Part shown: in pieces, positions 6,356 to 32,441 of the stretch
Layout: every line of letters begins with the position of its first letter
How positions within the stretch are numbered: position 1 is the stretch's first letter
Source: Octopus sinensis
Lineage: Eukaryota
Assembly: GCF_006345805.1 (NCBI RefSeq)
Contig: NC_043010.1
Location: 60,698,001 to 60,762,000 of the forward strand
Direction of reading: 5' to 3'
DNA: 64,000 nucleotides
Notes under the pieces: generated by a model
Told to the model about the DNA's origin: nothing
Database searches by the model: none
Seen by the model: only the letters and a program-made list of their open reading frames with translations
Made by a program: the position numbers and the translations under genes

Positions 6356-8754
6356 ATGACAGCATATATTGGTCTACTGTGTCTTCTACATTTACTGATC
6401 ACCCTTGTACTGTCCATAGATATTACATACCATGTCAAGGAAGAAGACAGACCTCACACCTATATAGGAGACATTGCTGTTGACTCCAACTTATCACACC
6501 CTCTCACACATCAACAACACACTCTCATTACATTTACACAACTACAAAGGACAGTCGAGAGTGGTTCTCACTTATTTAATGTCACCAACTCAGGAAAACT
6601 ATACACTACTCAAACACTGGATGCTGAGTCTCTGTGTACATACAACAAGGAATGTTCCAGAATAGTTAAAGTAGCAGTGAGGAAAGGAAAAACTTTTATG
6701 AAGATTCTAAAGATAAAAATATTAATAGAAGATGTCAATGACCATTCTCCAGAATTTCCACAGAATGAAGTTGAAATTGAATTTCTAGAAAGAGACACTA
6801 AAGGAACTAGAATATCTCTTCTAAATGCAATTGATAAAGATATTTCAATTAAAAATTCTCAAATTATATACATGATAAAAAAACGTAAAAGAGAACCATT
6901 TTCTCTCTCTGTCACAAAGCGACATGATGGTGTCTATGTTCCAGGACTGATTCTAGAGGACAAATTAGACAGGGAACTAAAAGACTCATATGTGTTGACC
7001 CTGGAGGCTAGAGATGGAGGGAACCCTCCCAAAACAGCTACACTCAAGGTACATATATCTGTGACAGATGTCAATGATAATACACCTGTATTTTCACAAG
7101 AACTTTACAACATCTCTATAAGTAATTCACATCAAAGACATTTACCAATTCTTACTTTAAAAGCCACAGATCAGGATTCTGGAGACAATGGAATAATTTC
7201 TTATCATTTCAACCATAAAACATCTCAAAATGTCCTGAAATATTTTGTATTAGATAAGAAAACAGGTGATTTATTTTTACATGATAATTTTGACTTTAGT
7301 AAAAAGCAGTCTTATAAAATATTTATAGAAGCACAAGATGGAGGAAAACCTCCCCTTAGTACTGTAACCAAAGTCCAGATTCACATTATTAATAACCAGA
7401 ATAATGCTCCATTGATTAACATAGATTTTGTATCTCCTTTATCAGAGAGTTCAGCAGCAGTTTCTGAAGACAGTGAAGTAGATAGTTTTATAGCTTATGT
7501 TATGGTCACTGACAATGATAGTGGACCTAATGGTGAGGTTATCTGTGATTTAAAACATGATAAATTTAAACTTGCCAAAATAGATTCTAAAGAATATAAA
7601 ATGATTGTTAAGGGCCATCTTGACAGAGAAATAAGGGACCACTATAAAGTATCTATTGTGTGTCATGACATGGGGTCACCTCAACTAGAAAGTAAAAAAT
7701 ATTTCTCTGTCAAAGTAACTGATGTCAATGATGTAGAACCACATTTTACGAAAGAGACATTCCAATTCCTCACCTATGAAAACCAGAAAGTTGACTTCCC
7801 TATTGGCTTCATCAATGCTACAGACCCTGATCTTGGAGATGGAGGCCAACTTACATATTCTATCATCAATGATAACAACAATGATAACATTCCTTTCCAA
7901 CTGACAAAATATGGATTTATTTCTACATCACAACCAATAGATCGAGAAATGAAAGACATCTATAAGTTCAAGGTTTTAGTGAAAGATAATGGACACCTTC
8001 TCTCAATGACACTGCCAATATTGTTATTGAGATTCTAGATAAAAATGATAATGCTCCGTATTTTACGTTTCCTAATAATGACCCTTACAATCTAGATGTC
8101 CACTACCATCCACACAGTAAGAAGGACATCACAATTCTGAGAGCATCTGACAAAGACACTGGAAACAATGCTTTCCTCACATATGGAATACTGAGATCCA
8201 ATGATAAAAACCTGTTTACAGTGAACTCACACACTGGTGTGTTATCTTTCTCTCGCACAGTTTACCAAAATGATGCAGGAACATATGAGCTGCAGTTTAT
8301 AGTGAAAGACGGTGGTACTCCAGCTCAATCAGCAACAACTGCTATCATACTAACACTGTTTGTTAGTAATGATACATCTCCAATGTTGACTGCTGTGCCA
8401 TTCCAGTCTGGTCACGACCTGAATATGACTTGGGTAATTATCATTGTAGCAGCAGCTGTAATACTATCTGTGGCTATTGTAGTGTCCATAACACTGTGTG
8501 TTTTCAGATGTATTAATCACACAAATAACTCACCCACAACAGCAGAGAATCCCAACTTTCTCTCTCAGACTGAGATGAGACAATTACTGTATCAGACTAA
8601 CAATCCTGTTGCAATAACGAGAAATGCAGAAGAGATATTTAACCGAAATCTTCAGACAATAAAATCTAAAAGTCAGTTTTTTCTGGAGATGGAACAGACA
8701 CCAGATGAGTGGAAATTCTCAACAACACAAAGGAGACTTCCACCTGTGCCTCAG
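6356..8754 (+). CDS. PCDH: Protocadherin gene A, large coding exon (signal peptide, EC1-EC6, TM, juxtamembrane), with a 1-nt frameshift at about 7993
   Basis: ORFs 6356-8038 and 8221-8784 are two frames of one exon. Cadherin motifs DVNDHSPEF, LDRE, DVNDNTPVF, DxDxGxNG, and the EC1 C-X5-C loop (CTYNKEC) typical of protocadherins; TM WVIIIVAAAVILSVAIVVSITLCVF. Gene A reads GGACACCTTC where gene B reads GGAACACCTTC; restoring one A gives 2400 nt, the same as gene B. Donor CAG|GTAAAT after 8754 (phase 0). Symbol is family-level only. Confidence 0.95.
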
Positions 8755-9621
8755 GTAAATACAATTTTAGTTGTTATATCCTAAATCTGTGACATTTTTT
8801 TAACCTTTGGTTGAAGTATTTATTGTTCCTCTCTCATATTTCATTTCAAAACAACAAAGTACAGTATTTGAGTTGCGAAAGAGACAACCTCCATTTCTTA
8901 TATTTTTTACTGTGAATATGTCATTGAACTCATACAGGTCTCTCTGATGTTTTATGAAAACATGATTACCAATTAAAAAGTATCCTAACTCATCTGATTG
9001 ATCAATAATTTGTCAAATTATGTTATATGTTATAGAAGATATAAATATTATCATTTAAAATCATTTCCAATATTTCTGTCATGTTTCTGTAGTTTTCATA
9101 TATTCTGTTTCAAAGATGAGATGATGGTACTCAATTTAATATTCGTTGATATGATGGTACTCTTATTTTAAATGTCTATTGTTTCTCTTGGTGGCTTCGT
9201 AATCATGTCATGAATATGAAATTAATTTTATTAGCTTTCAGTGGTTTATGATCAGATGCATTATATAGCATCTGGAAACACCAGCATTGTTTATGCTATG
9301 ACCATTTCTGCCATGTGTTTGTCAAACATTAAATGGCCAAATGTTAAAATGATTTTCATCCATCTTTGAGATATTTCTTCTTGTAATCCTAATGCCGACC
9401 CGATAAGGAATCAGTCGTTTTTGAAGTGCCTGGTTTTAAACACTCTATATTAAATTGGATTGTTCATTGTGTGCATATATTTATTATTATTTTGAGTTTC
9501 ATTACTTTTATATAATAATCTAATTCTTGTGTCTTACCAGGAAACTATTTAGAAAATATGCATGTTAGCATCTATCCTGGTAAACATGACACTTCACTCT
9601 GCTTTGTTTTCTAATCACCAG

Positions 9622-9766
9622 AGATGTGATTCAATCCATAGTCAAGGACGTCGTACCAGTTCCATCATGTCTTACAACAGTGACACGTTAACATCCCAAA
9701 AGGACAGAGAAGCTAGCAAGAGTAATGGCAAGACTAAACCATATGATGAGATACCTGCAGAACCAG
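9622..9766 (+). CDS. PCDH: Gene A cytoplasmic exon 2 (RCDSIHSQGRR...PYDEIPAEPG)
   Basis: Acceptor TTTTCTAATCACCAG, donor CAG|GTAACT; 145 nt, phase 0 to 1, open in frame with exon 1; near-identical copy at 19406-19550. Confidence 0.85.
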
Positions 9767-9930
9767 GTAACTTTTATCAAAACATTACATATAAATGTAA
9801 TTGCCTTTATTACTGTAGGACAATATATAATGTTATGCTTAGTGTAATACAAGATCAATGTTTCTATCTTTATATATTGGAGTTGTTATATTGAAATGTA
9901 ATTTGTGTTTGTATATTTGATATTTTGCAG

Positions 9931-10010
9931 AATATACCAATGACAATCCAGTTGCAGCCACAATACTAAAGGGACAACAAATACAAGATACCTATCTACA
10001 GCCAACATAG
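9931..10010 (+). CDS. PCDH: Gene A terminal coding exon (EYTNDNPV...DTYLQPT*)
   Basis: Acceptor ATTTTGCAG; phase-1 entry gives 26 further codons ending in TAG at 10008-10010; copy at 19715-19794. Confidence 0.82.
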
Positions 10011-10689
10011 TAGATGTTCCATGACTATTGTTAAATGATTCTCTCACACACCAAATCTTATACAATACTTTATATTCATATAAAAATATCAACTCTATGT
10101 TTCTTTCACACATCACACATGTAAAAGGCCTTACAATGGCATCTATTATGACCCCTTATTTACATCTCTTATACATTAAATACTACAAAAGTCCTACTTT
10201 ATATTATCATAGTATATTATTAGAAAATACCTATTTTACTCTCTGTTTTAGTATAAATATTACCTTAGACATAAACCAGTTAATTTTAGCTTTCCTGGAA
10301 TGGATTTAATTAATGTATATCATGAATATTAAATTCATATGGTCAAACATTTTCTATCTTCTAGTGAGGTTTTTTTTTGGTAATTGCTGAATTTATCATC
10401 TCATATTAAAAGTTATACAACTTGAATGAAACAAAAAATATAATCCCATATTTTCAATAGAAATCCATTTTTATTTACACTAACTATGTAATCAAGTCAT
10501 ATTAATGATGATATCCCTGTAAATTATCAAGCTGCTTCAGTGTAACATGAATTCTCTTATTCGATGTGTTTGTGTGACACAGACAACATTGCAGTAATTT
10601 CCTATTGGATGAGAGAGATTTTCTATATTTCTTTCAATATTGAAAGTGAGGCTGATAGCTTTTTTCTTTGTTCATCATACACACAATGT

Positions 10690-10967
10690 GTGTGTGTGTG
10701 TGTGGAGGACATAGAGTTGTAACTAGCACACACCAGCATCTGGCTAACACCTCACCTCCCACTACATACAGCAACTGTCACACTATTATATCAGCAGTTA
10801 CACAGGAACAGCAGCAGCAGCTGCAGTAACACAGGAACACTACTACAACAGCAGCAGTACCACTATAATACCACTACAGCAGCAGCAGCAGCAGTTGGAG
10901 TGGAACACTACAGCAGGATACATATCATCCATCACACACAACTACAGTGAAGGATTAAACAATGCTG
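10690..10967 (+). promoter_or_regulatory. Candidate non-coding leader exon / promoter module for gene B
   Basis: CAG/CTA-rich block ending GGATTAAACAATGCTG|GTAAGT followed by a (CT)n tract; paralogous blocks end at 27037 and 40488. The 5' boundary (TSS) cannot be determined from sequence. Confidence 0.55.
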
Positions 10968-11084
10968 GTAAGTCTCCCTCCCTCTCTCTCTCTCTCTCTT
11001 TATTATCTTTTCATATTCATTATAACATTTATATTATTTGTGTTTCTAATGACAGACAGGGTAAGGATAATATCTAAAATGTCT

Positions 11085-11220
11085 GCCATGTTGTATATAT
11101 ACAGGGACTGGGACAGTGGAGGATCGAGAGATCTAGCCATCACTTCCACCATTAACAACAACAACAATAGCTGCAGTAGTCATTGTATTACAATTACTTT
11201 GAACTGGATTACTTCTTTCA
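11085..11220 (+). repeat. Conserved non-coding block downstream of the leader donor, paralog at about 27500-27570
   Basis: GGGACTGGGACAGTG..GA.CGAGAGATCTAGCCATCACTTCCA versus GGGACTGGAACGGTG..AACCGAGAGATGTAATCATCACCTCCA. Confidence 0.6.
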
Positions 11221-11493
11221 ATGTTAGAATCACACAAGACTCCATACATATATATTGCTATGATATATTTTATATATAATAATGGTTTAATATATTCCAA
11301 ACTAGGTATCTATATATTTATTTTGCTATCAGAAAACATTTATTGAAAACCAATAAGACTGAGTTTCAATAATGTATGTCAGTATTGTTTATATCTCTGT
11401 CGGCATAATAATTCACTAATTAAATCTTAATCTTTCTGTTGCTTTTAATGAACTATCCGATCACTAATATTTCTATATAAGTATATAAATCTG

Positions 11494-11494
<1 letters not shown>

Positions 11495-11562
<68 letters not shown>

Positions 11563-11589
11563 CATACATACATACATATATATATATAT

Positions 11590-11620
<31 letters not shown>

Positions 11621-11640
11621 TATATATATATCTACTATAT
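11495..11640. repeat. (TA)n/(TAGA)n microsatellite
   Basis: Directly visible. Similar compound TA/CA/TG tracts at 25160-25570, 27130-27250, 43815-44030, 50160-50465, 57480-57710, 58200-58350, 59320-59710 and 62667-62840. Confidence 0.95.
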
Positions 11641-11782
11641 ATTTGTGAGAAGGGCAGACGTTGTCTCACAAGCAGTTCCGCAGGCAAAAGTGTTTGTAAA
11701 TGTGCTCGGATTGACCTGAAAATTTGTACACTTGTGTTAAAAGTGGTGGGGAGTTTGCATGGCAACATATATATACATATAA

Positions 11783-11820
<38 letters not shown>

Positions 11821-13989
11821 TTACAACCTGTAAAATATCCACTATGTATTCCTTTGTATATAATATACTGCAAATGTTTATTATGATTATTAATATTATT
11901 AGTGTTGTTGAGGTGGTAAGATTCAGAATCATTTGCACACTGGGTGAAATTCTTAGTGGCATTTCTCCTGGCCTTATTATCTAGGTTCAAATTCTGCTGT
12001 GGTTGACTTTGCCTTTCATCTTTTCAGGGTCAATAAATTAAGTACCAGTGAAACACTAGGGTTCAATGAATTGACTAGTCCCATCCTCTCAAATTTCAGG
12101 CCTTGTGTTTTAAGTATAAGGCATCATCATCATCATCATCTTCATCATTGTCATCGTCATCATCATTATTAGTGTGATTCGTTATAGTTTTTAGTGCAAG
12201 ATGTAAGCTGATGATATTGTCATGTGTTGTTAAAATATATTAACTCTGACTACAAGAGATGAATGTTGTAGATTTCTTCTTACAAACTAACATGCACCAC
12301 ATTATTAGAGTTTCTTATTTGTTGAATATAATATAATGGAAATAGTTTTTATGTATAAGAATTTCCTTGTATGTAAAGAGGAATTAAAATATTTTACAAT
12401 TAGTTTGATAAGGAAGAGATCTACTTATTTCTTGAAGATAATTATATTTTTCCATCAACATTCACTCCACCATTTTATGATTCCCATCTTTAGTTTAGTG
12501 CAAATTATCCTTGTGAACTCCAATTGTCTCTTTTGGCATGGATTCTATGGCTTGATGCCCTTCTTAGCACCAAGCACTTTATAAAGTGTCCTGGGTATCC
12601 TTTATGTGGCACCAACATGGGTGCTTTTCACATGGTTTGTTAAGTTGTAATAATTATTGTCAATATAATTCAGTATTTTGTGTGCAGTTTATTTAGAAAT
12701 ATTCCATGAAGATTTTGGTTAAATTTCCAAAATATCCAATCAACATTTCCCAAATGTTTAGCTTTCTAAACTTAAATTCCTCTAATTAGATTTTCCCCAC
12801 TCAATGCTATTTAATAACTTCATTATAATTTATTTTTCATTAAGCTCTATTTTAATCTCATAGAACTGTTTTTATTCTTTAATTATTAATCCTAAATGAC
12901 ATCCTACCAGCCAACATCAGACCTCCTTATATTGTTACTAACTTCAGTCTGAACCTCAAATTTACTTAGTTTATTTTTCATATGAAATAGTTACCAGCCA
13001 CTTAGGTAAACCTTCTGTGAATTACATGGGTGTACGAAGTGGGTGTTGACATCCAATTTCTCTAATGGATATGAACCACTGACCACTCTGCTGGTTGTCT
13101 GGTACTTTACCATCTGATCCATGCAGTCATTCAACACCAACCAGAGTCAGGGGGTAAATATTAACCATTGTGGACCACTTCAACCCATTGGACTGGACCC
13201 TGATTGTGTTTCTTCCATCTCCTTCCCTTTGTGAGCTCCTGAGTTAGATCCTAAACTCACCAAACCTTTCAATCTATTTCTGTCTATGATGGTCTACTCA
13301 ACTTCTTGAAGCATTCACTGGTTTCTCTGTTTCCCTAAAATGTCAGGCTGTTAGAAACATTAATTCATGTCCAGAGTAAAATGTATGGTGACGTGTATAT
13401 ATGTATTCATTTCCATTTGTATAAACAGTCTATATTTTTTAATGTCTATTCAGACTTATATTTCAGTAAATTGTCTGAATTTGTTTGTAATTTATTAAGA
13501 TCTCTGTTCAAACACATAATGTTAAAAATATGTTTTCTTTATATATTTGTTTATATATTTCCACTATCATCATCATTATTATTATCATCACCATCATTTA
13601 ATGTCCGTTTTTCATGCTGAAATGGGTGGGACAGTTTGACAGGAGCTGTCAGCTGGAGGGTTTCTCAGGTTTCAATTGTCTCTCTTGGCATGCTTTCTAC
13701 AGCTAGTTGCCCTTCCTAATGCCAACCACTTCAGAAACTGTACCTGGTGCTTTGTACGTAGCACTGGCACAAGTGCTTTTACATAGCACGGGTACTTTTA
13801 TGTGGCACTGCTCGGCATGGGTGCTTTTAGGTAGCAGGCCTCAGCATAGGCACTTGAATATGGCACTAGCAGAGGTGCTTTTACATGGGTCGGGCACTGG
13901 TTCGAGTGCTCTTTTGTGGAACCAGTGCAAGTTCTTTTAGTGACACCAGCACCCACAAAACTATAAGAACAAGCTCTTAGCTAAGAGAG

Positions 13990-15350
13990 GGACATAGAGG
14001 ACATGCTGTATGTATGGATGGCCACAGTTTTACTTAACTTGGCACATCTTCTCAAGCACAGCAAACTGTCAGAAGTCTTTGTCCCTTGTCACCTTCTCTG
14101 TGAAGCCCAGTAACTGAAGATCTTTTCTCACTAGTTTGTCCTATTTTTTTCCTGGGTCTAGCCCTTTCATAGGTTCCCTCCATCCCTCTACAATTAGAGA
14201 TCAGCACTTCTTTACGCATCTGTCCACATCCAAACGCATCACATGACCAAACCAGTGCAGTCTTCTTCCTTGCACACAACATCTGATACACCTTATACCC
14301 AGTTTTCCTCTTAAATCATTTACACTGTGTCATGCATGCACACTGACATTACCCATCCAGAGGTGCATGCTGGCTTCAATTCTTTCAAGCCTTTGCATGT
14401 CCTCTGTAACCATAGCCCATGTTTCACTGCCATGTGGCATAGCTGTATGTACACAGGCATCATCTGTCTTTCACTCTTAGGTTGAAGCCCTTTGTTACCA
14501 ACAAAGGTAGAAGCTCTCTGAACTTTGCTCAGCCTGTTCTTATTCTAGCAACTACACTTTCAGAACTTCCACTTCCATTGCTAATTTGGTCATTTGGGTA
14601 ATGGAAGCTATCTACTACTTCTAAGGATACCCACCAGACATTTCAGGAAGTTTGTTCTCTGTACATTCTTAGTGCTTATTGTACCTGCACATCTGCCACA
14701 TACAGACTACTTTCTCAGTCAACCTTCCCATAATGCCACTGCACTTCTCATATGTCCATAGCCTTCACTGGGTACACCTTATATCAAGCAGGGCCATCTG
14801 CCTGAAGGGATTTAAGTTTTGTTTGTGTTCCTACTAACTAGGACTTTTGTCTTAGTTAAATTAACTTCAAAGCCCTTAGATTCCAGACTTTGCTTCCACA
14901 CCTGAAATTTCTTCTCTAGTTCAGGTAGTGATTCAGCTTTAAGAACAAGCTCATCAATATAGAGGAGCTCCCATGGGCAGCCAGTCTGAAATTCCTCTAT
15001 TATGGCCGGGAGGATTGTGATAAACTAGAGGGGTCTGAGAACCAATCCTTGGTAAACTCCCACTGGTACACTAAATTCATTGCTACTCTCATTGCCAACC
15101 TTCACCTAACTGACAGCATCCATGTACATGGCTTCTATCACTCTCACCAACCGCTCATCTATCCCTAACTTCTGCATTGTCCACCAGATGAGCAAATGGA
15201 GGACTCTGTCAAAGGCTTTCTCCAGGTCTACAAACCAAATACAAAGATTTATTCTTGGCTAAATGCTTCTCTTACAGTTGCCCTATTAGGAAGATAGCAT
15301 CAGTAGTGTTTCTCCCTGGCACAAAACCAAACTGCATTTCATCCAGGCTA
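13990..15350 (-). mobile_element. Degenerate RTE-clade LINE fragment (RT and C-terminal region)
   Basis: Minus-strand translation shows QFGFVPGRNTTDAIF, a DLEKAFDR-like motif and WELLY(I)DELVL (YADD motif degenerate); multiple stops and frameshifts. Confidence 0.8.
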
Positions 15351-16581
15351 ACCCTCTTCCTATATATAGACATCTGTTATCTGGCGAAGGATATGCCAAC
15401 CTCTCTAATGTTGGTGCCATGATAAGATATACCCAGAACTCTCTGTAAATATACTATAAGGTGTTAAGAATGTAGATATAGTAACCATGCCAAATGAATA
15501 AAAAATGGTAGATGAGCAGAGGGTGAGTGTACAAACTGTAAGGGGAAAAACAGTTAGAGAATACCATATGATGGCTGGAATATAGGGTTAGTGTAGCAAG
15601 AGGGTAGTGAGATAAAGAAAGGATAGAGTGGGGAGTAGGGTACCATAGTGGAGAGCAGGGTATGAAAGTAGAAAGACGATGCTGGGAAGGTGAGGAATGG
15701 TAGGTGGATGCAACAAGATCATCTCAGTCAACAGCACAATCTTTATCAGTCTGATTTCTACCATATTTGGCTGAAGGAACAACATTTTCTCCACTACAGC
15801 ATGTCACCAATTGTCACATGCTGTTGTCATCCCTTTTGAGAAGGTCAGCATCTGCAGGCAGATTCTCACCATTTCTTTTCCATGTATTTTAGGTCTTCCT
15901 TTTCCAATGGCACCATTCACATTGCACATTTCTAATTCCTGACAGTGTTTCATTTAGACAACCTGTTGGACAGAACTGCTAAATACTTCAATTTGTGTGT
16001 AAATTATAAACAAACACACATGCACACACACAATTGTAACTTGAGAACTTACAATTGTTTGTTCATCAACTGTCAATAGTAAAACTACAACAAAACATTA
16101 CAACTACTGGTTCGTTAAAACAAACCAAAGTAGAATCACCATATGAGTAGTTCAGGAGGATTGAATGAAATATGGCGTTTGAATATCTTTGACAAAACGA
16201 TATTGTGGTATTCACACCCGTATACTGTAATATACGCTTCACATATAGCCTACACTTTGAGACGGTTCCTTCGTCAGTGTGCAGGAGATAAATATGATTT
16301 TACCATATTCTGCCAGTACATGTCCTAGCAGTACAGTAGGGAAGCTACCATGGAAGGTTCAGATATTATTGGTCTTCACCATACCATGGTACCTGCTACA
16401 TATTATCTATTAAGCAACCTCATCGCAACCAAAAGAACTAACTGCTATCAGAACAGAAAAGATGACATATTTTAAATAATTCTGATGAATCTAAATGTAT
16501 ATATTTGGAGATGGAAATAATATTTACACAAGTCATTATACTTAGGTCTTATCATCTTTGAATTCTACATAAGCTTTTAAT

Positions 16582-16601
16582 ATCCTTCTTGTCTTTTGTA
16601 G
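16582..16601 (+). promoter_or_regulatory. 3' splice acceptor 38 nt upstream of the gene B start codon
   Basis: CCTTCTTGTCTTTTGTAG. Confidence 0.7.
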
Positions 16602-16639
16602 CAATTTCTCCTGCTGAAATGTGATGAAGAATTCCAGAC

Positions 16640-19039
16640 ATGACAGCATATATTGGTCTACTGTGTCTTCTACATTTACTGATCACCCTTGTACTGTCCA
16701 TAGATATTACATACCATGTCAAGGAAGAAGGCAGACCTCACACCTATATAGGAGACATTGCTGTTGACTCCAACTTATCACACCCTCTCACACATCAACA
16801 ACACACTCTCATTACATTTACACAACTACAAAGGACAGTCGAGAGTGGTTCTCACTTATTTAATGTCACCAACTCAGGAAAACTCTACACTACTCAGACA
16901 CTGGATGCTGAGTCTCTGTGTACATACAACAAGGAATGTTCTAGGATTGTTAAAGTAGCTGTAAGGAAAGAAGAAACATTTATGAAAATTTTAAGGATAA
17001 AAATATTAATAGAAGACATCAATGACCATTCTCCAGAGTTTCCTTATCAGAAAGTTGACATAGAATTTGTTGAAACTGAAGCAAAAGGTCTAACAAAAAC
17101 AATTCCAAATGCTATTGATGAAGATATTTCAATACAAAATTCTCAGATTACATACTTGATTAAGAAAAGTAGAAGAGAACCATTTTCTCTCTCTGTCACA
17201 AAGCGACATGATGGTGTCTATATTCCAGGACTGGTTCTAGAGGACAAATTAGACAGGGAAGTAAAAGACTCATATGAGTTGATCCTAGAAGCTAAAGATG
17301 GAGGCAACCCTCCCAACACAGCTACACTCAAGGTACACATATCTGTGACAGATGTCAATGATAATACACCTGTATTTTCACAGAAACTCTACAACATCTC
17401 TGTAAGTAATTCACATCAAAGACATTTACCAATTCTTACTTTAAAAGCCACAGATCAAGATTCTGGAGACAATGGAAAGATTTCTTACCATTTCAACCAT
17501 AAAACATCTCGAAATATCCAGAAATATTTTGTATTAGATAAGAAAACCGGAGATTTATTTTTACATGATAATTTTCAGGTTAGTAAAAAGCAGTCTATTA
17601 AATTATTTGTAGAAGCAAGAGATGGAGGAAAACCTCCCCTTAGTACTGTAACCAAAGTTCAGATTCATGTTGTTAACCATCAGAATACTGCTCCATTGAT
17701 AAATATAGATTTTGTATCTCCTTTAACAGAGAGCTCAGCAGCAGTTTCAGAAGCAAGTAAAATTGGTAGTTTTATAGCTTATGTTATGGTCACTGACAAT
17801 GATAGTGGACCTAATGGTGAGGTTATCTGTGATTTAAAACATGATAAGTTTAAACTTGCCAAAATAGATTCTAAAGAATATAAAATGATTGTTAAGGGTC
17901 ATCTTGACAGAGAAATAAGGGACCACTATAAAGTATCTATTGTGTGTCATGACATGGGGTCACCTCAACTAGAAAGTAAAAAATATTTCTCCGTCAAAGT
18001 AACTGATGTCAATGATGTAGAACCACATTTTACCAAAGAGACATTCCAATTCCTCACCTATGAAAACCAGAAAGTTGACTTCCCTATTGGCTTCATCAAT
18101 GCTACAGACCCGGATCTTGGAGATGGAGGCCAACTTACATATTCTATCATCAATGATAACAACAATGATAACATTCCTTTCCAACTGACAAAATATGGAT
18201 TTATTTCTACATCACAACCAATAGATCGAGAAATGAAAGACATCTATAAGTTCAAGGTTTTAGTGAAAGATAATGGAACACCTTCTCTCAATGACACTGC
18301 CAATATTGTTATTGAGATTCTAGATAAAAATGATAATGCTCCGTATTTTACGTTTCCTAATAATGACCCTTACAATCTCGATGTCCACTACCATCCACAC
18401 AGTAAGAAGGACATCACAATTCTGAGAGCATCTGACAAAGACACTGGAAACAATGCTTTCCTCACATATGGAATACTGAGATCCAATGATAAAAACCTGT
18501 TTACAGTGAACTCACACACTGGTGTGTTATCTTTCTCTCGCACAGTTTACCAAAATGATGCAGGAACATATGAGCTGCAGTTTATAGTGAAAGACGGTGG
18601 TACTCCAGTTCAATCAGCAACAACTGCTATCATACTAACACTGTTTGTTAGTAATGATACATCTCCAATGTTGACTGCTGTGCCATTCCAGTCTGGTCAC
18701 GACCTGAATATGACTTGGGTAATTATCATTGTAGCAGCAGCTGTAATACTATCTGTGGCTATTGTAGTGTCCATAACACTGTGTGTTTTCAGATGTATTA
18801 ATCACACAAATAACTCACCCACAACAGCAGAGAATCCCAACTTTCTCTCTCAGACTGAGATGAGACAATTACTGTATCAGACTAACAATCCTGTTGCAAT
18901 AACGAGAAATGCAGAAGAGATATTTAACCGAAATCTTCAGACAATAAAATCTAAAAGTCAGTTTTTTCTGGAGATGGAACAGACACCAGATGAGTGGAAA
19001 TTCTCAACAACACAAAGGAGACTTCCACCTGTGCCTCAG
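16640..19039 (+). CDS. PCDH: Protocadherin gene B, intact large coding exon (800 codons: signal peptide, EC1-EC6, TM, juxtamembrane)
   Basis: 804-aa ORF with six cadherin repeats and a TM segment; donor CAG|GTAAAT after 19039, so the last four residues (VNIF) are intron read-through. With exons 2 and 3 the product is 874 aa. Confidence 0.97.
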
Positions 19040-19405
19040 GTAAATATATTTTGAAACAATTCAATTTTTTAATAATAAATTTCTTTCACATTTTGAAAAT
19101 GATCTTTCAAATGTAAGGATGTATAATTTTTTTGTTTGTAATTTAGTAAAAATTATATAATTAGATTCTCCAGAATAAATGGAATTGTCTTCATTTAACT
19201 AGTAAATGTTTTCTTGTTGTTTCTCTACTTATTTTATACTAGCAAATTCTTCAAATATACTGTTAATTTGATTCTACCATCCAAAATTTACTTTTTTTAT
19301 AAAAGTATCCTTTTATTATCTCTTATTAAGAACACTCTAGAATATAGATATAAATGCTACTTCCATTTTGTATTGTTTCACCCTGCTTTGTTTTCTAATC
19401 ACCAG

Positions 19406-19550
19406 AGATGTGATTCAATCCATAGTCAAGAACGTCGTACCAGTTCCATCATGTCTTACAACAGTGACACCTTAACATCCCAAAAGGACAGAGAAGCTAG
19501 CAAGAGTAATGGCAAGACTAAACCATATGATGAGATACCTGCAGAACCAG
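19406..19550 (+). CDS. PCDH: Gene B cytoplasmic exon 2
   Basis: CACCAG acceptor, CAG|GTAACT donor, 145 nt, phase 0 to 1, in frame. Confidence 0.87.
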
Positions 19551-19714
19551 GTAACTTTTATCAAAACATAACATATAAATGTAATTGCCTTTATTACTGT
19601 AGGACAATATATAATGTTATGCTTAGTGTAATATAAGATCAATGTTTCTATCTTTATATATTGGAGTTGTTATATTGAAATGTAATTTGTGTTTGTATAT
19701 TTGATATTTTGCAG

Positions 19715-19794
19715 AATATACCAATGACAATCCAGTTGCAGCCACAATACTAAAGGGACAACAAATACAAGATACCTATCTACAGCCAACATAG
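19715..19794 (+). CDS. PCDH: Gene B terminal coding exon (...DTYLQPT*)
   Basis: TTTTGCAG acceptor, 80 nt, phase-1 entry, TAG at 19792-19794. Confidence 0.85.
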
Positions 19795-20158: not shown

Positions 20159-20340
20159 TAATGAAATAATTACTGTATTAGACTAACAGCCCTGTTGCAA
20201 TAACCATAAATGCAGAAGAGATATTTAACCAAAATCTTCAGACATTAAAATCTAAAAGCCAGTTTTATATGGAGATGAAGTAAACACCAGAGGAATGGAA
20301 ATTCTCAACATCCCAAATCCTACCACCAACACCAGTAAGT
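20159..20340 (+). pseudogene. Relic 3' end of a protocadherin large exon (decapitated fourth gene)
   Basis: Aligns with 18861-19045 (e.g. CCTGTTGCAATAAC..AAATGCAGAAGAGATATTTAACC.AAATCTTCAGACA.TAAAATCTAAAAG.CAGTTTT); two in-frame TAA codons; ends CCAACACCA|GTAAGT. No EC or TM sequence upstream. Confidence 0.85.
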
Positions 20341-24441: not shown

Positions 24442-25409
24442 TCCCTGCACTTCTGTTTTAGCTCTAATTCTAATTTTTTTAATCATTTCTATTCACACGT
24501 CTCCTCCAGCCTCTGAGAATTCACACAGGAGGAAACAAATCTACCCCAGTGGATTACTATTGACCCTGTCCTGGTCATCCATGGCCAGTAATATCAAACA
24601 GTAGAAGTTAAAAGATCAAGGCTTCGTCCAGTTAATCAATATGGCAAGGTATTAACATGTCAAAAATGTCAAAGGATTACAACAGCTTCAACATTGTCGA
24701 GTACCATTTTAACACTGAGATTAGTAAACTATATCTGCATGAGTCCACCATTCCATCAGTCCTTGGCTCCAACATGATTGTACCACTACAACAATAACAA
24801 CATAAATAATGATAATAATGTGAAGCGTTTCATTTGGAAATTACCATTGCTGTCAGCTGTCGCTTCTATTGATACTGTTAAACGCAGTCTACTCAGTCAC
24901 CGACCAGTCCACCCCTAATATGATGACAACAGCAACAACATCATCATCACTATCATCTGATATTGTTTGGAACTTTTATATCCCAGGCATCTACAACTCA
25001 TACTTTGCCATTTCTGGATTTACTACAACATCATTCCACTTCTATTTAGCCATTTCTGGATCACTACAAACATGGATACCTACAGCTCTGACACCTACCA
25101 CGCTCAGGTATTCAATGCTTGTATCATTCAACAATGCATTGCGAAATACATGCTTATATATATATATATCTACATATACATATATGTATGTATATATAAA
25201 TATACATGTACGTACACACACACACACTCACACTCATATATACATTCATATATATAACCTTAAATTAAAAATCACAAATCTTGCAATGACAGCCACCTTA
25301 CTGTAATTTCAAGATTTGTGGTTTTTAATTTAAGATTATCTTTACTCTGAGTAGCAGTTTTTTTGTGATGTTTTTGCAGCTTCAATAAAAACAAAGTATA
25401 TATATATAT

Positions 25410-25462
<53 letters not shown>

Positions 25463-26019
25463 CACACACACCACATATATATATACACATATACACACAC
25501 ATATATATATACACATATACATATGTATGTATACGTACATGTGTATGTACATACGTACACAAACATGCAGTATATATAGTTTTTTTAACAGATGGAACAC
25601 ACACACACACACATGGACACATCACTAGTAATATTTATAGCATCAGTATTACTAATACTACTGTCCCCACCACCACCACTACAACAGCAACAACAAACAC
25701 CTCCACCACCACTACTACTACTACTGCTACATCAGGTATTGACATCTCGGCAAAGATGCTGCTGCACTGTAATATGTCAATAGAAGCAGCAGCAGCAGTA
25801 GTAGTAGTAGTGGCAGCAGTTCAGTTTTTTTTGTTTTTTTTACTGCGAATGGCTCTAATCAATGAAATCTATAAAAAATCAGGATATAACTGGTACTTAA
25901 CGTATTGGCTCTGCTGGGATGATTGTCACAGTTTGTTTTAACTAAATTTAAACCCAGAAGAAATAAAGGGCTGGGATCCCTATCAGTCAGCCATTTTAAA
26001 CAATGATGGAGATGGTGGT

Positions 26020-26133
26020 TATTATTATTATTATCATTATTATTATTATTATTATTATTATTTACAATAACAATTATTTTTGTTATTATTAATGTTAATA
26101 ATAATAATAATAAAATATTAATAATAACGAATA

Positions 26134-26173
<40 letters not shown>

Positions 26174-26200
26174 TATTAATAATAACGAATAAAATAATAA
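26020..26200. repeat. (ATT)n/(AAT)n trinucleotide tract
   Basis: Directly visible; another at 48805-48885. Confidence 0.9.
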
Positions 26201-26579
26201 ACAATCAATATAAGAATGGAAAATATTATTTAAATTTTTTTTATTTTAAACTAACCCTGACGAACAAAATCAATAACAACGACAAAAAAAGGAATAAAAT
26301 ATGATAATGACAAAAAATAGTGTTTTGTTTATGATAATAACAATCATAATTATAATAAAGATAATGAAATTAATAATATAAATATCATACCTTTTTTTTA
26401 TATATATATAATTTCTGTTCAGTTAAAACTGAACTAAAATAGAAAGCATAAAATTGCTAATCGTATATATACATGAACACACACACACACACACACACAC
26501 ACAGAAGAGTAAAACACTTCTTTCATTCACATAAACACACACACACACGCACATACATAAACACATACATATACACGCT

Positions 26580-27037
26580 ATTATTCACGCTGGTTGCCCC
26601 ACCTTTGTCCCTTACCAGCCATTCATGAGACTGTACAACACTCCACATGGAGCAGATGTTGCGTCTGACTGACTGACAGGCTGGCTGGTTGCCTGGTTGG
26701 CTGGCTGGTTGGCTAACTGACTGACAACACTGGTCTGTCAGTACAGAGAGACACTGTCACATTACTACAACAGCAGCACTTAACACTGTCACACTGCTAC
26801 AAGAATAATAAGCGTTACTACAACAACATTTGTTACACGGAAACACTACTACAGCAGCAATTACACAGGAGCACCACTACTGCTACTACATCAACAGCAG
26901 CAGCAGTAATAACTCAGGAGTAGCATCACCATTACTACATCGACAGCAGCAGCAATTACTCAGGAACACCACCACTACCACCGCCACTACATCAATAGAA
27001 TCCATGCCTCTACAACAACAGGGGATTAAACTGTAAG
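26580..27037 (+). promoter_or_regulatory. Candidate promoter and non-coding leader exon for gene C
   Basis: GC-richer (CTGG/TTGG)-repeat segment, then a CAG/CTA block sharing ACTGTCACA, TTACAC(A/G)G(G/A)A(A/G)CAC and GGATTAAAC motifs with 10690-10967; donor AAG|GTCAGT followed by CTCCCTC as in the gene B module. Confidence 0.55.
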
Positions 27038-27194
27038 GTCAGTCTCCCTCTTTTATTTTTTCTCATTAGATTTCTCTGTGGATCATATTTTAAACCTTAG
27101 AGTAGGATAACAAATATATCAGCTGTCATATATATGTGCCTGTGCTGTATATGTGTGTGTGTTTGTGTATATATGTATATATATGTATATGTAA

Positions 27195-27231
<37 letters not shown>

Positions 27232-27384
27232 TATATATGTATGTATATATGTTATAGCAAAACTGGTAAATGTTTGTGGTATTATTATTTTCCATATATA
27301 TTTTTCATTACCAACAGGAGATATCAAGGTATATATATAGAAAAACGTAGAATACATCTATTAGTGTATGTGTATCAATTTCTC

Positions 27385-27396
27385 TCTATCTCTCTA

Positions 27397-27482
<86 letters not shown>

Positions 27483-27495
27483 TCTCTCTCTCTGT
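27385..27495. repeat. (CT)n microsatellite
   Basis: Directly visible; others at 37038-37080, 40502-40540 and 47266-47280. Confidence 0.95.
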
Positions 27496-28640
27496 TGTGT
27501 ATAGTTATATATATGGGGACTGGAACGGTGTATAACCGAGAGATGTAATCATCACCTCCATTATGAACGACATCATCCACAATGAATCAGTGATGGAGCC
27601 TCTATGATGTTGTTCAACTTGCTAGGAATGGCAACCAAATCACCGTCAATTTACACCTTATCATTTGATAAAATGATGAAAACATTGCATAATGTAGTCC
27701 AAGGTGGATAATGCACATAAATAATAGGTACTTATAATTAGGTGGCTTTGATTATGCGCTTGCTCAGTGAGGGTTGTCCTGAGGCCAAACACCAACAGCA
27801 CCAGCAATCGTTGTATTATGACATCTTGAAGGAAGGCATCATATTCCTATAACAACAACTACACAACACTCCTACATTAATTACAGTTTGGATATTTAAT
27901 TGGATATATAATGTCTCATTAATTAATGTCTTCTTTATGGCTATTTTTAACAAAATTTCTTAATTGTTAGTCAATAGTGATTGATCTGTAGAGATATTGT
28001 TTATAACCCCAGGTCAGCTGCAACTGGACAGTGCTGTGATCAAAGACATTCCAACTATAGCCATCACTTTGTTTATTTAAGCACTCTATCTCAGCCTGGT
28101 TTAGCCATTGTATTCTTCTTTTCAAAGTGCTAGGCCATCAGTTGAAGAACCTTTGGCTGCTATTTCTAGCAGATTCAATGACTACATAGAGACTTTTTTG
28201 TCAGGATGTATGTCAGAGGGATTGTGTTTGTATGTGTGTATGTGTGTGTGTGTGTGTGCATGCACGTATGTGTGTGTGTGTGTGCGCATGTGTGTGTGTG
28301 TGCATGTTTGCATGAGATAAATTTGTGTGTGTATGTATGTGTGCATGTGAGAGAGAGAGAGAGAGAAAAGTAAATCTGTGTATGGGTATGAGAGTGGTAA
28401 ATGGTGTGTGAAGTAAATTTATGTATTTGTTTATGTGAGGTAAGTTGTATGTGTGTGTTTGTGTAAGGAAAATAGAATTTCCAAACCGTATTGTGTCTAA
28501 AAGCCAAAGCAATGTTGTTCCTCAGGGATGCTGTATCTGCCATTCTGTAATTAAAGCTCCACAACATTACTAGGTTGGTCCTTGTATAATTCTCTACAAC
28601 TATTGTTGCTATTGTTAGTGTTGTACAGCGTTAGGATAGA

Positions 28641-28965
28641 AGGCACGCGGCTTAGTGGTTAGGGCACTCAGCTCACCATCATAAGACCATGAGTTCAATT
28701 CCTGGCAACGCATTGTGTCCTTGGGCAAGACACTTTATTTCACGTTGCTCCAGTTCACTCAGCTGGCAAAAATAAGTAGTACCTGTATTTCAAAGGGCCA
28801 GCCTTGTCACACTCTGTATCACATTGAATCTCCCTAAGAACTACGTTAAGGGTACATGTGCCTGTGGAGTGTTCAGCCACTTGCATGTTAATTTCACGAG
28901 CAAGCTGTTCCATTGATCGTATCATCTGGGACCCTCATAGTCATAACCAACAGAGTGCTCCTTTT
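28641..28965 (+). mobile_element. tRNA-derived SINE (family C)
   Basis: GGCTTAGTGGTTAG A-box, GAGTTCAATTCC B-box, then TGTGTCCTTGGGCAAGACAC; reverse copy at about 23120-23325. Confidence 0.8.
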
Positions 28966-29317
28966 TATTTTTAAGGGCCTCCGGGTCGGTGGCATGTAAA
29001 AAGCACCATCCAACCGTGGTTGTTTGCCAGCCTCGTCTGGCACGTAAAAAGTACCCACTACACTCATGGAGTGGTTGGCATTAGGAAGGACATCCAGCCG
29101 TAGAAACATTGCCAGATCAGACTGGGCCTGGTGCAGCCTTCTGGCTTCCCAGACCCCAGTTGCACCGTCCAACCATGCCAGCAAGGAAAGCGGACGCTAA
29201 ACGATGATGATGATGTTAGGATAGATATAACTTGGTACATGCTGTTAGTGTACCCCTTGTTATACGTTGACAGTATACACCTTGTTTTATAGTTTTACAA
29301 TGACAGTATACACTACG

Positions 29318-29470
29318 AAACACAATGTCACTGTACTACATGTTAAACAATGTCACCCCAAGTTACACAATGTCCCGGCACCCCATGTTAAACAATATCA
29401 CACTGCACCATGTTACACAGCGTTGCATTACTCCATGTTATGCAATGTCACATTACCCCATGTCACACTT
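29318..29470. repeat. Degenerate minisatellite, unit about 25 bp
   Basis: Recurrent ATGTTA(A/C)ACAAT(G/A)TCAC...CCC, roughly 6 copies. Confidence 0.6.
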
Positions 29471-29983
29471 ATCCATGTGGCAGTAGCTGAAGTACAACAC
29501 ATTGACACATTCCTCTTGACTCCGTGTTCTATATGTTGCTTGTCAGGCCCTACATGCAAACATAATCTATATCTTACCCTCATACATACACACACACACA
29601 CACACATATCACTGTTGTTGTCATCATCATCATCATCATCGTTTAACATCTGTTTTCCATGCTGGCATGACTTGGATGGTATGAGAGGAACTGATAGCCA
29701 GAGAGATACCCAGGCTCAATTGTTTGTTTTGGCATGGTGTCTATGGCTGGATGTCCTTCCTAATGCCAACTGTTTACAGAATGTGTTGGGTGCTCCATAT
29801 GTGGCACTGGCACGAGTTCTTTTTACAGGGTGGTGCCAGCACAAGTTCTTTTTCATGGTTCTTTTTACAGAGTGCTAACATGAACGTGTGTGTGTGTGTC
29901 TGTGTGTCTGTGTACTATAATACAAATTATTGTCTTCTTTCTTGGTGCCCTTCATGCACTTAAAGAAGTCTCTATGATCAACA

Positions 29984-30001
29984 TGTATTTTTCATTTGTA
30001 G
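29984..30001 (+). promoter_or_regulatory. 3' splice acceptor 35 nt upstream of the gene C start codon
   Basis: TATTTTTCATTTGTAG. Confidence 0.7.
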
Positions 30002-30036
30002 GAAACCTCTTATCTGGACAATGGTGAAAACTTCTG

Positions 30037-32441
30037 ATGATGACTGGATACATTACCTTTCTTGTGTGTCTTCTATATTTACTGATCACCCTTGTACTGT
30101 CCATAGATATTACATACCATGTCAAGGAAGAAGGCAGACCTCACACCTATATAGGAGACATTGCTGTTGACTCCAACTTATCACACCCTCTCACACATCA
30201 ACAACACACTCTCATTACATTTACACAACTACAAAGGACAGTCGAGAGTGGTTCTCATTTATTTAATGTCACCAACTCAGGAAAACTATACACTACTCAG
30301 ACACTGGATGCTGAAACTCTATGTACATACAACAAGGAATGTTCCAGAATAGTTAAAGTAGCAGTGAGGAAAGGAAAAACGTTTATGAAAATTCTTAAAG
30401 TTAAAATAATTATAGTAGACATCAATGACCATGCTCCCAAGTTTCCAGGAAATCAGTTCCATCTGGAATTTGATGAAAATGATGGAGTTGGAACTAAGAA
30501 ATCCCTTCCAAACTCTATCGACAAAGATGTTAGTGTTCAGAATTCAAATATTAGATACCAGCTGAATAAGAACATTGATGGTGTTTTCTCATTGATAACA
30601 TCAAACTTATATGGCAATATATTCACACCTGAAATAGTTTTAGAAAAGAAGTTAGACCGAGAAACAAAAGCTAGCCATATGCTAGAGTTAATAGCAAAAG
30701 ATGGAGGTTCCCCACCAAAATATGACACCTTGGAAATTCTTATACAATTAACAGACGTTAATGATAATAGACCAATATTTTCACAGAAAATGTACAATGT
30801 CTCTGTAACAAATTCACATAAAACATCATCTCCAATATTGACTTTATCAGCAACTGATATGGATTCAGGACAAAATGCTAAGATTTCATTCTTATTTAAT
30901 CAACAAACATCAAATGAAGCAAAGAAGCATTTCACCTTAAATAAAATCACTGGAGACATTTTCCTAAAGCAAAAATTTAGCTATGATAACAAACAGGTGT
31001 ATAATTTATTTGTTGAAGCAAGAGATATGGGAAGTCCATCTTTGAGTTCCATAACAAAGATACAAGTAAATGTAATTAATACTCAAAATACTGCTCCATT
31101 AATTAATATAGATTTTGTATCTCCTTTATCAGAGAGCTCAGCAGCACTTTCAGAAGACAGTGAAGTAGATAGTTTTATAGCTTATGTTATGGTCACTGAC
31201 ACTGATAGTGGACCTAATGGTGAGGTTATCTGTGATTTAAAACATGATAATTTAAACTTGCCAAAATAGATTCTAAAGAATATAAAATGATTGTTAAGGG
31301 CCATCTTGACAGAGAAATAAGGGACCACTATAAAGTATCTATTGTGTGTCATGACATGGGGTCACCTCAACTAGAAAGTAAAAAATATTTCTCTGTCAAA
31401 GTAACTGATGTCAATGATGTAGAACCACATTTTACCAAAGAGACATTCCAATTCCTCACCTATGAAAACCAGAAAGTTGACTTCCCTATTGGCTTCATCA
31501 ATGCTACAGACCCTGATCTTGGAGATGGAGGCCAACTTACATATTCTATCATCAATGATAACAACAATGATAACATTCCTTTCCAACTGACCAAATATGG
31601 ATTTATTTCTACATCACAACCAATAGATCGAGAAATGAAAGACATCTATAAGTTCAAGGTTTTAGTGAAAGATAATGGAACACCTTCTCTCAATGACACT
31701 GCCAATATTGTTATTGAGATTCTAGATAAAAATGATAATGCTCCGTATTTTACGTTTCCTAATAATGACCCTTACAATCTCGATGTCCACTACCATCCAC
31801 ACAGTAAGAAGGACATCACAATTCTGAAAGCATCTGACAAAGACACTGGAAACAATGCTTTCCTCACATATGGAATACTGAGATCCAATGATAAAAACCT
31901 GTTTACAGTGAACTCACACACTGGTGTGTTATCTTTCTCTCGCACAGTTTACCAAAATGATGCAGGAACATATGAGCTGCAGTTTATAGTGAAAGACGGT
32001 GGTACTCCAGTTCAATCAGCAACAACTGCTATCATACTAACACTGTTTGTTAGTAATGATACATCTCCAATGTTGACTGCTGTGCCATTCCAGTCTGGTC
32101 ACGACCTGAATATGACTTGGGTAATTATCATTGTAGCAGCAGCTGTAATACTATCTGTGGCTATTGTAGTGTCCATAACACTGTGTGTTTTCAGATGTAT
32201 TAATCACACAAATAACTCACCCACAACAGCAGAGAATCCCAACTTTCTCTCTCAGACTGAGATGAGACAATTACTGTATCAGACTAACAATCCTGTTGCA
32301 ATAACGAGAAATGCAGAAGAGATATTTAACCGAAATCTTCAGACAATAAAATCTAAAAGTCAGTTTTATCCGGAGATGGAACAGATACCTAATGAATGGA
32401 AATTCTCAACAACACCCCGGAGACTTCCACCAGTTCCACAG
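30037..32441 (+). CDS. PCDH: Protocadherin gene C, large coding exon with a 1-nt frameshift at about 31250
   Basis: ORFs 30037-31269 and 31287-32501 are two frames of one exon. CATGATAATTT here versus CATGATAAATTT (A) and CATGATAAGTTT (B); restoring one base gives 802 codons. Donor CAG|GTAAGT after 32441. Confidence 0.95.

Follow-up and report, generated by a model that had tools for sequence, protein, structure and literature searches.

In the alpha, beta and gamma protocadherin clusters of vertebrates, gene conversion is described as being confined, among the extracellular cadherin (EC) repeats of the ectodomain, to EC1 and EC4-EC6, with EC2-EC3 spared (Noonan et al. 2004, as related in PMC4978886), and the mean identity within mouse Pcdh-alpha is 96% in EC1, 69% in EC2, 59% in EC3, 85% in EC4, 98% in EC5 and 84% in EC6 (PMC4978886). 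In clustered and delta protocadherins, the EC2/EC3 interface provides specificity and the EC1/EC4 interface non-selective affinity, and the antiparallel EC1-4 dimer has been deduced to be older than the split of the protocadherin families (PMC5001838); EC5-EC6 form the cis interface (PMC8901172). The cephalopod and vertebrate protocadherin expansions are independent and lineage-specific, the genes not being orthologous (PMC9068888, PMC9712504), and the absence of shared constant exons in cephalopod protocadherins is already on record (PMC9068888). In the brain of Octopus vulgaris, the average is reported to be about 19 protocadherin genes per cell (PMC9712504). For the protocadherin clusters of cephalopods, gene conversion has been proposed in a general way (Albertin et al. 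2015, as cited in PMC6339937; Albertin et al. 2022, PMC9068888). Here we analyze a 64,000-nucleotide stretch of Octopus sinensis chromosome CM016872.1 (GCA_006345805.1, positions 60,698,001-60,762,000; hereafter, the window), which contains three protocadherin genes, A, B and C, and show that domain-restricted homogenization by gene conversion is by far the best explanation of the pattern of identity among them. Whereas the published statements on gene conversion in cephalopods were made at the level of whole-gene trees, the present result is tract-level and domain-restricted, and in the open-access literature, our searches turned up no account of where such tracts begin and end in these clusters, of a restriction to certain domains, of spared EC2-EC3, of a homogenized intron and tail block, or of proof by means of orthologues.

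The window was placed through protein P0001, which gene B matches exactly, and the coordinates of the P0001 record. All three genes are encoded on the + strand, belong to a tandem array of complete genes, and consist of one large ectodomain exon followed by the gene's own two small cytoplasmic exons. In paralog B, Pfam detected a Cadherin_2 domain (aa 23-106) and five Cadherin stretches (E = 1e-72), which amount to six EC repeats, and reported no cytoplasmic cadherin domain. The translation contains five DxNDN-type linkers and a hydrophobic transmembrane (TM) segment, and the closest solved structures among the PDB matches are ectodomains of clustered and delta protocadherins. With six EC repeats, one TM segment and, in gene B, the whole ectodomain and TM segment in a single large exon, the genes have the makeup of protocadherins. 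The large exon of gene A encodes the signal peptide, EC1-EC6, the TM segment and the juxtamembrane (JM) region, according to the translation of its open reading frame (ORF), tblastn with P0001, and the Pfam result on paralog B. Gene B is open from 16640 to 19039 (800 codons), between an acceptor at 16601 and a donor at 19040. A polypyrimidine-TAG acceptor located 35-38 nucleotides (nt) before the ATG is conserved in every copy, including those of Argonauta hians (window 6296-6355, 16580-16639 and 29980-30036), and implies that a separate exon of the 5' untranslated region (UTR) precedes the large exon; homology between paralogs begins exactly at this acceptor. Before the ATG, the alignable DNA comprises the acceptor and a 38-nt stretch of the 5' UTR, and the promoters lie beyond it, farther upstream. 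All three large exons end at a CAG/GTAA donor. The exons and tracts, in window positions, are:

6318-8754, + strand: large exon of gene A (NCBI model P0004); acceptor AG ends at 6317, ATG at 6356, donor CAG/GTAA after 8754
6390-6627, + strand: tract 1 in A, exon nt 35-272 (end of the signal peptide and most of EC1), homogenized in A, B and C
6656-7482, + strand: variable segment in A (last strands of EC1, EC2 and EC3), not homogenized
7483-8754, + strand: tract 2 in A (EC4, EC5, EC6, TM segment and JM region, up to the splice donor), homogenized
9619-10010, + strand: tract 3 in A, comprising exon 2 (9622-9766), intron 2 and exon 3 (9931-10010, stop codon TAG); cytoplasmic tail
16602-19039, + strand: large exon of gene B (P0001, 'protocadherin beta-15-like'), intact frame
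16674-16911, 16940-17766 and 17767-19039, + strand: tract 1, variable segment and tract 2 in B
19403-19794, + strand: tract 3 in B, comprising exon 2 (19406-19550), intron 2 and exon 3 (19715-19794)
30002-32441, + strand: large exon of gene C (ATG at 30037), of an older, different lineage
30077-30314, 30343-31169, 31170-32367 and 32368-32441, + strand: tract 1, C's own end of EC1, EC2 and EC3, tract 2, and C's own 3' end
36826-36988, + strand: exon 2 of gene C, C-type, similar to the tail of A. hians P0021 (tblastn with P0021, 66% identity, E = 9e-16), not homogenized with A/B
39057-39139, + strand: exon 3 of gene C, ending in QAYLEPV and the stop codon TAA (tblastn with P0021, 52% identity, E = 0.007)

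The splice sites of all three genes were read directly and are all intact, as are exons 2 and 3 of gene C, including frame and stop codon. Exons 2 and 3 of A and B were located by tblastn with P0001.

In a MAFFT alignment of the three large exons, all pairs are 98-100% identical over A 6382 to ~6670 and again over A ~7483 to 8680; in exon coordinates, the two identical blocks extend over nt ~35-300 and ~1128-2326 (to 2400 for A/B). Between these blocks, identity per 100 nt is 74-95% for A/B and 46-73% for C versus A/B, and across the end of EC1, EC2 and EC3, the difference ranges from 12% (A/B) to 37% (C versus A/B). A and C differ at 3 of 238 positions in nt 35-272 and at 6 of 1197 in nt 1128-2326, compared with 284 of 754 in nt 331-1084 (Fisher p = 4e-135); the corresponding counts for A and B are 3/238, 7/1198 and 88/754 (p = 2e-31). 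At the protein level, tract 1 covers aa 12 to ~100, that is, the end of the signal peptide and approximately the first 80% of EC1, and tract 2 covers aa ~376-775/800. The third tract, spanning exon 2, intron 2 and exon 3, is identical between A and B at 388 of 392 positions, including 162 of the 164 in intron 2. For intron 1, there is essentially no usable alignment of A with B (identity in 176 of 875 columns), and the upstream intron and the intergenic DNA of the paralogs cannot be aligned either; the 3' UTRs of A and B are 83% identical. In C, tract 2 stops at window 32367 (nt 2326). Private substitutions persist inside the tracts, and a Sawyer-type run test on variable sites only was significant for the pairs that include C, although this test is weak because few variable sites are left in co-homogenized tracts.

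This analysis followed up a sequence-only reading of the window, which had recognized the two homogenized tracts of the large exon and missed the third. The near-identity of the signal peptide and EC1 that it described in all three genes holds for nt 35-272 (three differences), but not for the first 34 nt of C, where the start of the signal peptide differs. Likewise, the near-identity from EC4 to the JM region is found in all pairs, with the exception of the last ~75 nt of C's exon. Its estimate of about eight A/B differences over A 7483-8754 turned out to be seven substitutions and one indel, and its description of intron 1 and the flanks as barely alignable agrees with the alignment, in which homology ends at the acceptor 38 nt before the ATG.

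Where EC4 begins, the 5' edge of tract 2 carries a two-state cassette (7463-7486 in A, 17747-17770 in B and ~31150-31173 in C). It reads EDSEVDS or EASKIGS in Octopus and EDSELDS or EASKVNS in A. hians, and its states are common to species and subfamilies, including O. vulgaris P0019 and O. bimaculoides P0041.

Synonymous (dS) and nonsynonymous (dN) divergence was calculated by the Nei-Gojobori method, and dN/dS also in 20-codon windows. Between C and the A-type copies (A, B and their like), dS is 1.35-2.28 in EC2-EC3 and 0.00-0.04 in EC4-TM; in tract 1, it is 0.07-0.13 versus 1.8-2.3 in EC2-EC3. Among seven A-type copies, dS is 0.26-0.64 in EC2-EC3, 0.007-0.049 in EC5-EC6 and 0-0.017 in TM-JM. 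For the variable segment as a whole, dS is 0.26 in A/B and 1.9 in A/C, with dN/dS of 0.19-0.36, and A/B is itself a mosaic within EC2-EC3 (dS of 0.70 at aa 106-175 and 0.15 at aa 176-362). Across EC2-EC3, dN/dS is 0.13-0.43, and no window of the exon exceeds 0.6. The combination of high dS and low dN/dS indicates that the variable block is old and evolves under purifying selection, rather than having been recently rewritten. The sequence-only reading had named uniform dS along the exon as a point to check; dS proved to be extremely uneven, from 0.00-0.04 to as much as 2.28. The GC content at third codon positions, a potential mark of GC-biased conversion, is 0.31-0.36 in EC1, EC5-EC6 and TM-JM versus 0.22-0.26 in EC2-EC3 and EC4, with codon positions 1 and 2 shifting alike; EC4 is converted and yet shows no GC enrichment.

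The history of gene C makes it possible to tell the old part of the mosaic from the copied one. In a local BLAST search of EC2-EC3 of C against the collected homologues, A. hians P0021 showed 75% aa identity, and all others 54% or less. P0021 has the N-terminus (MMTGYI), the exon 3' end and the cytoplasmic tail of C, and its place in A. hians, on the downstream side of the A-type array, is that of C in O. sinensis. C is 84% identical to P0021 in EC2 and 70% in EC3, compared with 51-62% to A/B in EC2/EC3. Over the remaining domains, C is 98-99% identical to A/B in EC1, 93-98% in EC4, 100% in EC5, 98-99% in EC6 and 95% in TM-JM, and its identity to P0021 is 86, 88, 91, 83 and 77%, respectively. 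In the neighbour-joining tree of nt 331-1084, O. sinensis C and A. hians P0021 form a group with 100% bootstrap, whereas in the trees of tract 1 and both halves of tract 2, C falls among the Octopus A-type copies and P0021 with those of A. hians (72, 96 and 64%). Thus, paralogs group by species inside the tracts and orthologues pair outside them, as is characteristic of concerted evolution, and this incongruence indicates that the C and A lineages split before Octopus and Argonauta did. In TM-JM, C differs by 10-11% from the A. hians A-type copies and by 22% from its own orthologue P0021, which gives the direction of transfer: A-type sequence overwrote C. EC1 and EC4-TM of C were overwritten after the Octopus-Argonauta split, and its EC2-EC3, with dN/dS of 0.13-0.2, is the old orthologous part. 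The description of this part in the sequence-only reading as heavily rewritten is therefore to be reversed, because it is the flanks that were replaced.

The same mosaic extends well beyond the window. The three-gene array of the sequence-only reading belongs to a sub-array of at least eight genes with the same layout, accompanied by other subfamilies, and at least eight O. sinensis copies over ~230 kb carry the mosaic with the same inner boundaries. Five of these are additional to A, B and C: U1 and U2 just upstream of the window and D1-D3 ~190 kb upstream; U1, U2, A, B and C all lie on the + strand at ~10-kb spacing. Across the eight copies, mean identity is 94% in EC1, 68% in EC2, 78% in EC3, 95% in EC4, 99% in EC5, 99% in EC6 and 99% in TM-JM, so that the likeness to vertebrate clustered protocadherins pointed out in the sequence-only reading is accurate (94/68/78/95/99/99% for EC1-EC6 versus 96/69/59/85/98/84% in mouse alpha). 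The 392-bp block of tract 3 was compared in 13 A-type copies from Octopus, and all of them are 98.2-100% identical; against the copies of A. hians, identity is 74-84%. The mosaic is also present within O. vulgaris (GCA_951406725.2) and A. hians (GCA_054771915.1), both independent assemblies. Paralogs of A. hians are 12-16% apart in EC2-EC3 and 1.2-2.3% in EC5-JM; between Octopus and Argonauta copies, these values are 19-23% and 8-11%.

A distant paralog, P0037, located 250 kb upstream, differs from B by 30-45% along most of the exon, but by only 2.6% in nt 1365-1836 (EC5), where ~470 bp are 97% identical to A/B/C. This tract (L009 4365-4836, O. sinensis CM016872.1 ~60.4542 Mb) is sharply bounded, especially at its 5' edge, with 24 differences in the 60 nt before the edge and one in the ~100 nt after it. 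At the protein level, the profile recurs in unrelated subfamilies, whose identity to B does not exceed 62%, among them O. sinensis P0087/P0092/P0100 (EC1 96-99%, EC2 63-77%, EC3 73-89%, EC4-EC6 99-100% identity), and many A. hians pairs are alike in this respect. Recurring in this way over subfamilies and species, the pattern is a family-wide rule in octopods rather than a peculiarity of three genes. Within EC2-EC3 of the A-type copies, the most variable patches, at aa ~120-200 and ~320-360, are kept in every copy. The first two-thirds of EC3 are less variable, with short identical patches between distant copies and with nearest neighbours that change along the segment; these identical patches imply that conversion also reaches EC3, without erasing the two variable patches. 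As a separate observation, at least 12 A. hians proteins match B at 80-84% identity. In O. bimaculoides, a much closer species, the best protein reaches only 67%; possibly, the A-type and C-type subfamilies are absent, collapsed or not annotated there.

The heterogeneity of dS, the homogenized intron, the sharp tract edges and the tree incongruence with respect to the Argonauta orthologue argue for gene conversion, and it was on the dS profile, the intron, the edges and the conflict among per-domain trees that the domain-restricted homogenization proposed in the sequence-only reading was borne out. These data show that interlocus gene conversion repeatedly copies three discrete tracts and spares EC2-EC3; the explanation as a whole, with the sparing attributed to selection for trans-binding specificity, is very probable, its part on selection being the more tentative one. 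Two of the tracts are copied between array members: one of ~240-300 bp, with the last part of the signal peptide and the greater part of EC1, and one of ~1.2 kb, with EC4-EC6, the TM segment and the JM region up to the splice donor. The third, ~0.4 kb spanning exon 2, intron 2 and exon 3, is copied among A-type genes only. The intervening ~830 bp (end of EC1, EC2 and EC3) escape copying and retain their old divergence under purifying selection. Conversion tracts measure ~0.25 to 1.3 kb, and conversion acts over distances of 10 kb to at least 250 kb. It continued beyond the separation of Octopus from Argonauta and up to approximately that of O. sinensis from O. vulgaris (the median paralog dS in EC5-EC6 is 0.021, versus 0.03-0.07 for an orthologous pair). 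Conversions that enter EC2-EC3 would be removed by selection, on the premise that this segment carries isoform-specific trans-binding specificity, and EC1/EC4 (non-selective affinity), EC5-EC6 (cis interface) and the tail would be kept common. The outcome would be a functional equivalent of the vertebrate variable/constant design, produced by concerted evolution and not by splicing. By analogy with the vertebrate proteins, we infer that EC2-EC3 may set homophilic specificity, and thus provide a neuronal identity code, in octopus.

Two other routes of exchange were considered and rejected. Unequal crossing-over alone does not account for C, in which both flanks are C-type (the N-terminus and upstream sequence on one side, the exon end and exons 2-3 on the other), implying that two internal patches were copied in, rather than that one crossover occurred. 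RNA-mediated conversion through cDNA is incompatible with intron 2, which is retained and homogenized.

As assembled, only B is open among the three genes of the window, so that two of the three protocadherin genes recognized in the sequence-only reading are frameshifted:

7992-7993, + strand: 1-bp deletion in A (GGAACACC to GGACACC), shifting the frame
~31250, + strand: 1-bp deletion in C

U2 is frameshifted as well, by three deletions, which brings the number of single-base deletions in the eight O. sinensis copies to five, all of them inside homogenized tracts, at short A runs or single bases. Because short reads cannot be placed uniquely in these tracts, and polishing fails there, we consider it more likely that the deletions are errors left in the assembly than that they are real lesions. 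No independent intact copy of A, by which its frameshift could be judged, was found in a search for one. The gene models conceal these frameshifts: P0004 (gene A) contains an invented intron that skips ~48 aa of EC5, and in P0006 (copy U2, L004 10001-12410), the N-terminus is spurious and an internal stretch is skipped. Any analysis of the protocadherin family at the protein level inherits these errors.

Several explanations other than selectively restricted conversion have to be considered. Conversion could be real and the sparing of EC2-EC3 passive, if mismatches between diverged copies block heteroduplex formation, creating a self-reinforcing boundary without selection for recognition diversity. 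Such a process fits the dN/dS of EC2-EC3, which is well below 1 everywhere, the match of the tract edges to abrupt jumps in divergence, and the position of the outer edges at exon/intron borders, where indels destroy homology. However, the A-type copies are still 80-90% identical in EC2-EC3 and contain short identical patches, so that conversion there is mechanically possible, and yet the two hypervariable patches persist in every copy; moreover, the same inner boundaries are found in unrelated subfamilies, in two other species and in vertebrates, contrary to what chance early divergence predicts. We regard passive sparing as unlikely, though far from negligible. Purifying selection alone, acting on the protein and on silent sites (for example, through RNA structure or RNA editing) without any exchange, would agree with the high conservation of EC5-EC6 amino acids even across species and subfamilies, and with between-species dS that is lower in the tracts (0.20-0.35) than in EC2-EC3 of orthologues (0.75). 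Selection on silent sites may contribute, but is contradicted as the sole explanation, and as such highly improbable: paralog dS in the tracts is 0.00-0.04 versus 0.20-0.35 between species, although the C and A lineages predate the species split; a non-coding intron is homogenized; and species-specific substitutions are common to all paralogs of a species.

A history in which whole genes were duplicated recently and EC2-EC3 was then rewritten fast under positive selection would likewise yield near-identical EC1 and EC4-TM along with many amino-acid differences in EC2-EC3, but under this scenario, neither the saturated dS of C in EC2-EC3 (1.4-2.3) nor the high values in A-type pairs (0.26-0.64), with dN/dS of 0.13-0.43, would be expected, nor would unalignable introns and intergenic DNA, or an A. 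hians orthologue of EC2-EC3 of C. The dS profile and the tree incongruence refute it, leaving it with next to no credibility. An artefact of assembly, collapse or polishing, whereby reads were mis-assigned in a long-read assembly polished with short reads, could be suspected from the confinement of all five single-base deletions of the GCA_006345805.1 copies to homogenized tracts. This explanation is very unlikely as well, given that the same mosaic is seen in the independent O. vulgaris and A. hians assemblies, that each copy keeps a few private substitutions inside the tracts, and that tract extents vary (to nt 2326 in C; only nt 1365-1836 in P0037), which collapse would not produce.

Gene conversion with selective sparing of EC2-EC3 remains the preferred reading, and several observations weigh against it. 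B and D3 are identical over nt 781-900, so that EC2-EC3 is not fully protected. Positive selection, sought by dN/dS in 20-aa windows, gave no signal (0.09-0.40 in EC2-EC3), and selection for EC2-EC3 diversity is deduced solely from the failure of this segment to homogenize. Between species, dS is 0.20-0.35 in the tracts versus 0.75-0.80 in EC2-EC3 of best-matched or orthologous pairs, a difference that concerted evolution alone does not predict and that may stem from constraint on silent sites (EC4-EC6) or imperfect orthology. Short-read polishing could have inflated tract identity from, say, 97% to 99-100%; it cannot have created the tracts, because these are replicated in two other assemblies and have copy-specific extents. 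Finally, if the single-base deletions are real, two of the three genes in the window are pseudogenes.

Apart from the three genes, the window contains a fragment of a further protocadherin gene and a retroelement:

20161-20334, + strand: relic of the 3' end of a large exon (last ~58 codons, equivalent to aa 741-799) with a donor-like GTAAGT, located just past the 3' UTR homology of B
33014-34574, - strand: broken reverse-transcriptase ORFs of a retroelement without long terminal repeats (non-LTR; Pfam RVT_1, E = 5e-24)

In self-BLAST, the relic is 87% identical to 8575-8731, 18860-19016 and 32262-32411, with 73% aa identity in tblastn, and probably represents what remains of a copy that was deleted or recombined. 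The retroelement lies in the 4.4-kb intron 1 of gene C and explains the length of this intron, without a role in the mechanism. A dispersed intergenic repeat family of ~200 bp, with 74-80% identity and in both orientations, is found at 2237-2463, 2728-2950, 11895-12119, 42905-43354, 44926-45100, 55609-55793 and 61083-61267, and is probably a SINE-like (short interspersed) element. Long microsatellite-like tracts of the TA/CA/TC type, recognizable in ORFs as YIYIYI, THTHTH and SLSLSL, at 11445-11990, 24869-25625, 27097-27504 and 28175-28567, occupy much of the intergenic space between the protocadherin genes.

Concerted evolution of tandem families with mosaic conversion tracts is familiar from, for example, globin or opsin duplicates. 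As in these classical cases, paralogs within a species of octopod are closer to each other than to their orthologues, and the tracts have sharp edges, span a few hundred bp to ~1 kb, and are flanked by diverged sequence. The octopod case differs from the classical ones in that a single internal segment is spared time and again, across many paralogs, subfamilies and species, and in that this segment matches the specificity domains of the vertebrate proteins. With the vertebrate clusters, the octopus genes have in common the tandem, same-strand array and the single large exon that encodes six EC repeats and the TM segment; the lowest dS in EC5/EC6 and the highest in EC2/EC3, with near-constant EC1 and EC4-EC6; and a cytoplasmic tail that is common within a subfamily. 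In contrast to the vertebrate alpha and gamma clusters, there are no shared constant exons, every octopus gene having a separate exon 2 and a separate exon 3 that ends in a stop codon. The 'constant' tail of the octopus genes is, unlike that of the vertebrate clusters, kept constant by conversion, and their large exon differs in being preceded by the implied separate 5' UTR exon.

For work on these genes, the homogenized tracts have practical consequences. With exons 2 and 3 and 1.2 kb of the large exon 98-100% identical among copies, short-read RNA-seq and 3'-end single-cell data will multi-map. Through the same identity, polishing will fail, as seen in the frameshifts behind gene models such as P0004 and P0006, and trees built from whole genes will make the paralogs look younger than they are.

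The expansion of protocadherins is the best-known genomic parallel between the nervous systems of cephalopods and vertebrates. Domain-restricted conversion of the vertebrate style is present here in an independent expansion of whole genes, with the 'constant region' held by conversion; a variable/constant architecture in octopus thus comes from concerted evolution, not from alternative splicing. The result identifies EC2-EC3 as the part of the protein in which differences are preserved, in contrast to the parts that are actively held alike, and thereby yields a concrete, testable prediction on binding specificity. More tentatively, and as a possibility that we consider doubtful rather than probable, octopods may have independently reached the logic of clustered protocadherins, whereby whole-gene duplicates, edited by concerted evolution, come to differ only in EC2-EC3, the rest (EC1/EC4 for affinity, EC5-EC6 for cis assembly, the TM segment and the cytoplasmic tail) forming a 'virtual constant region' upheld by gene conversion in place of splicing. 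If EC2-EC3 alone encodes homophilic specificity, then specificity in EC2-EC3 with the rest shared would be a convergent design principle for neuronal self-recognition codes.

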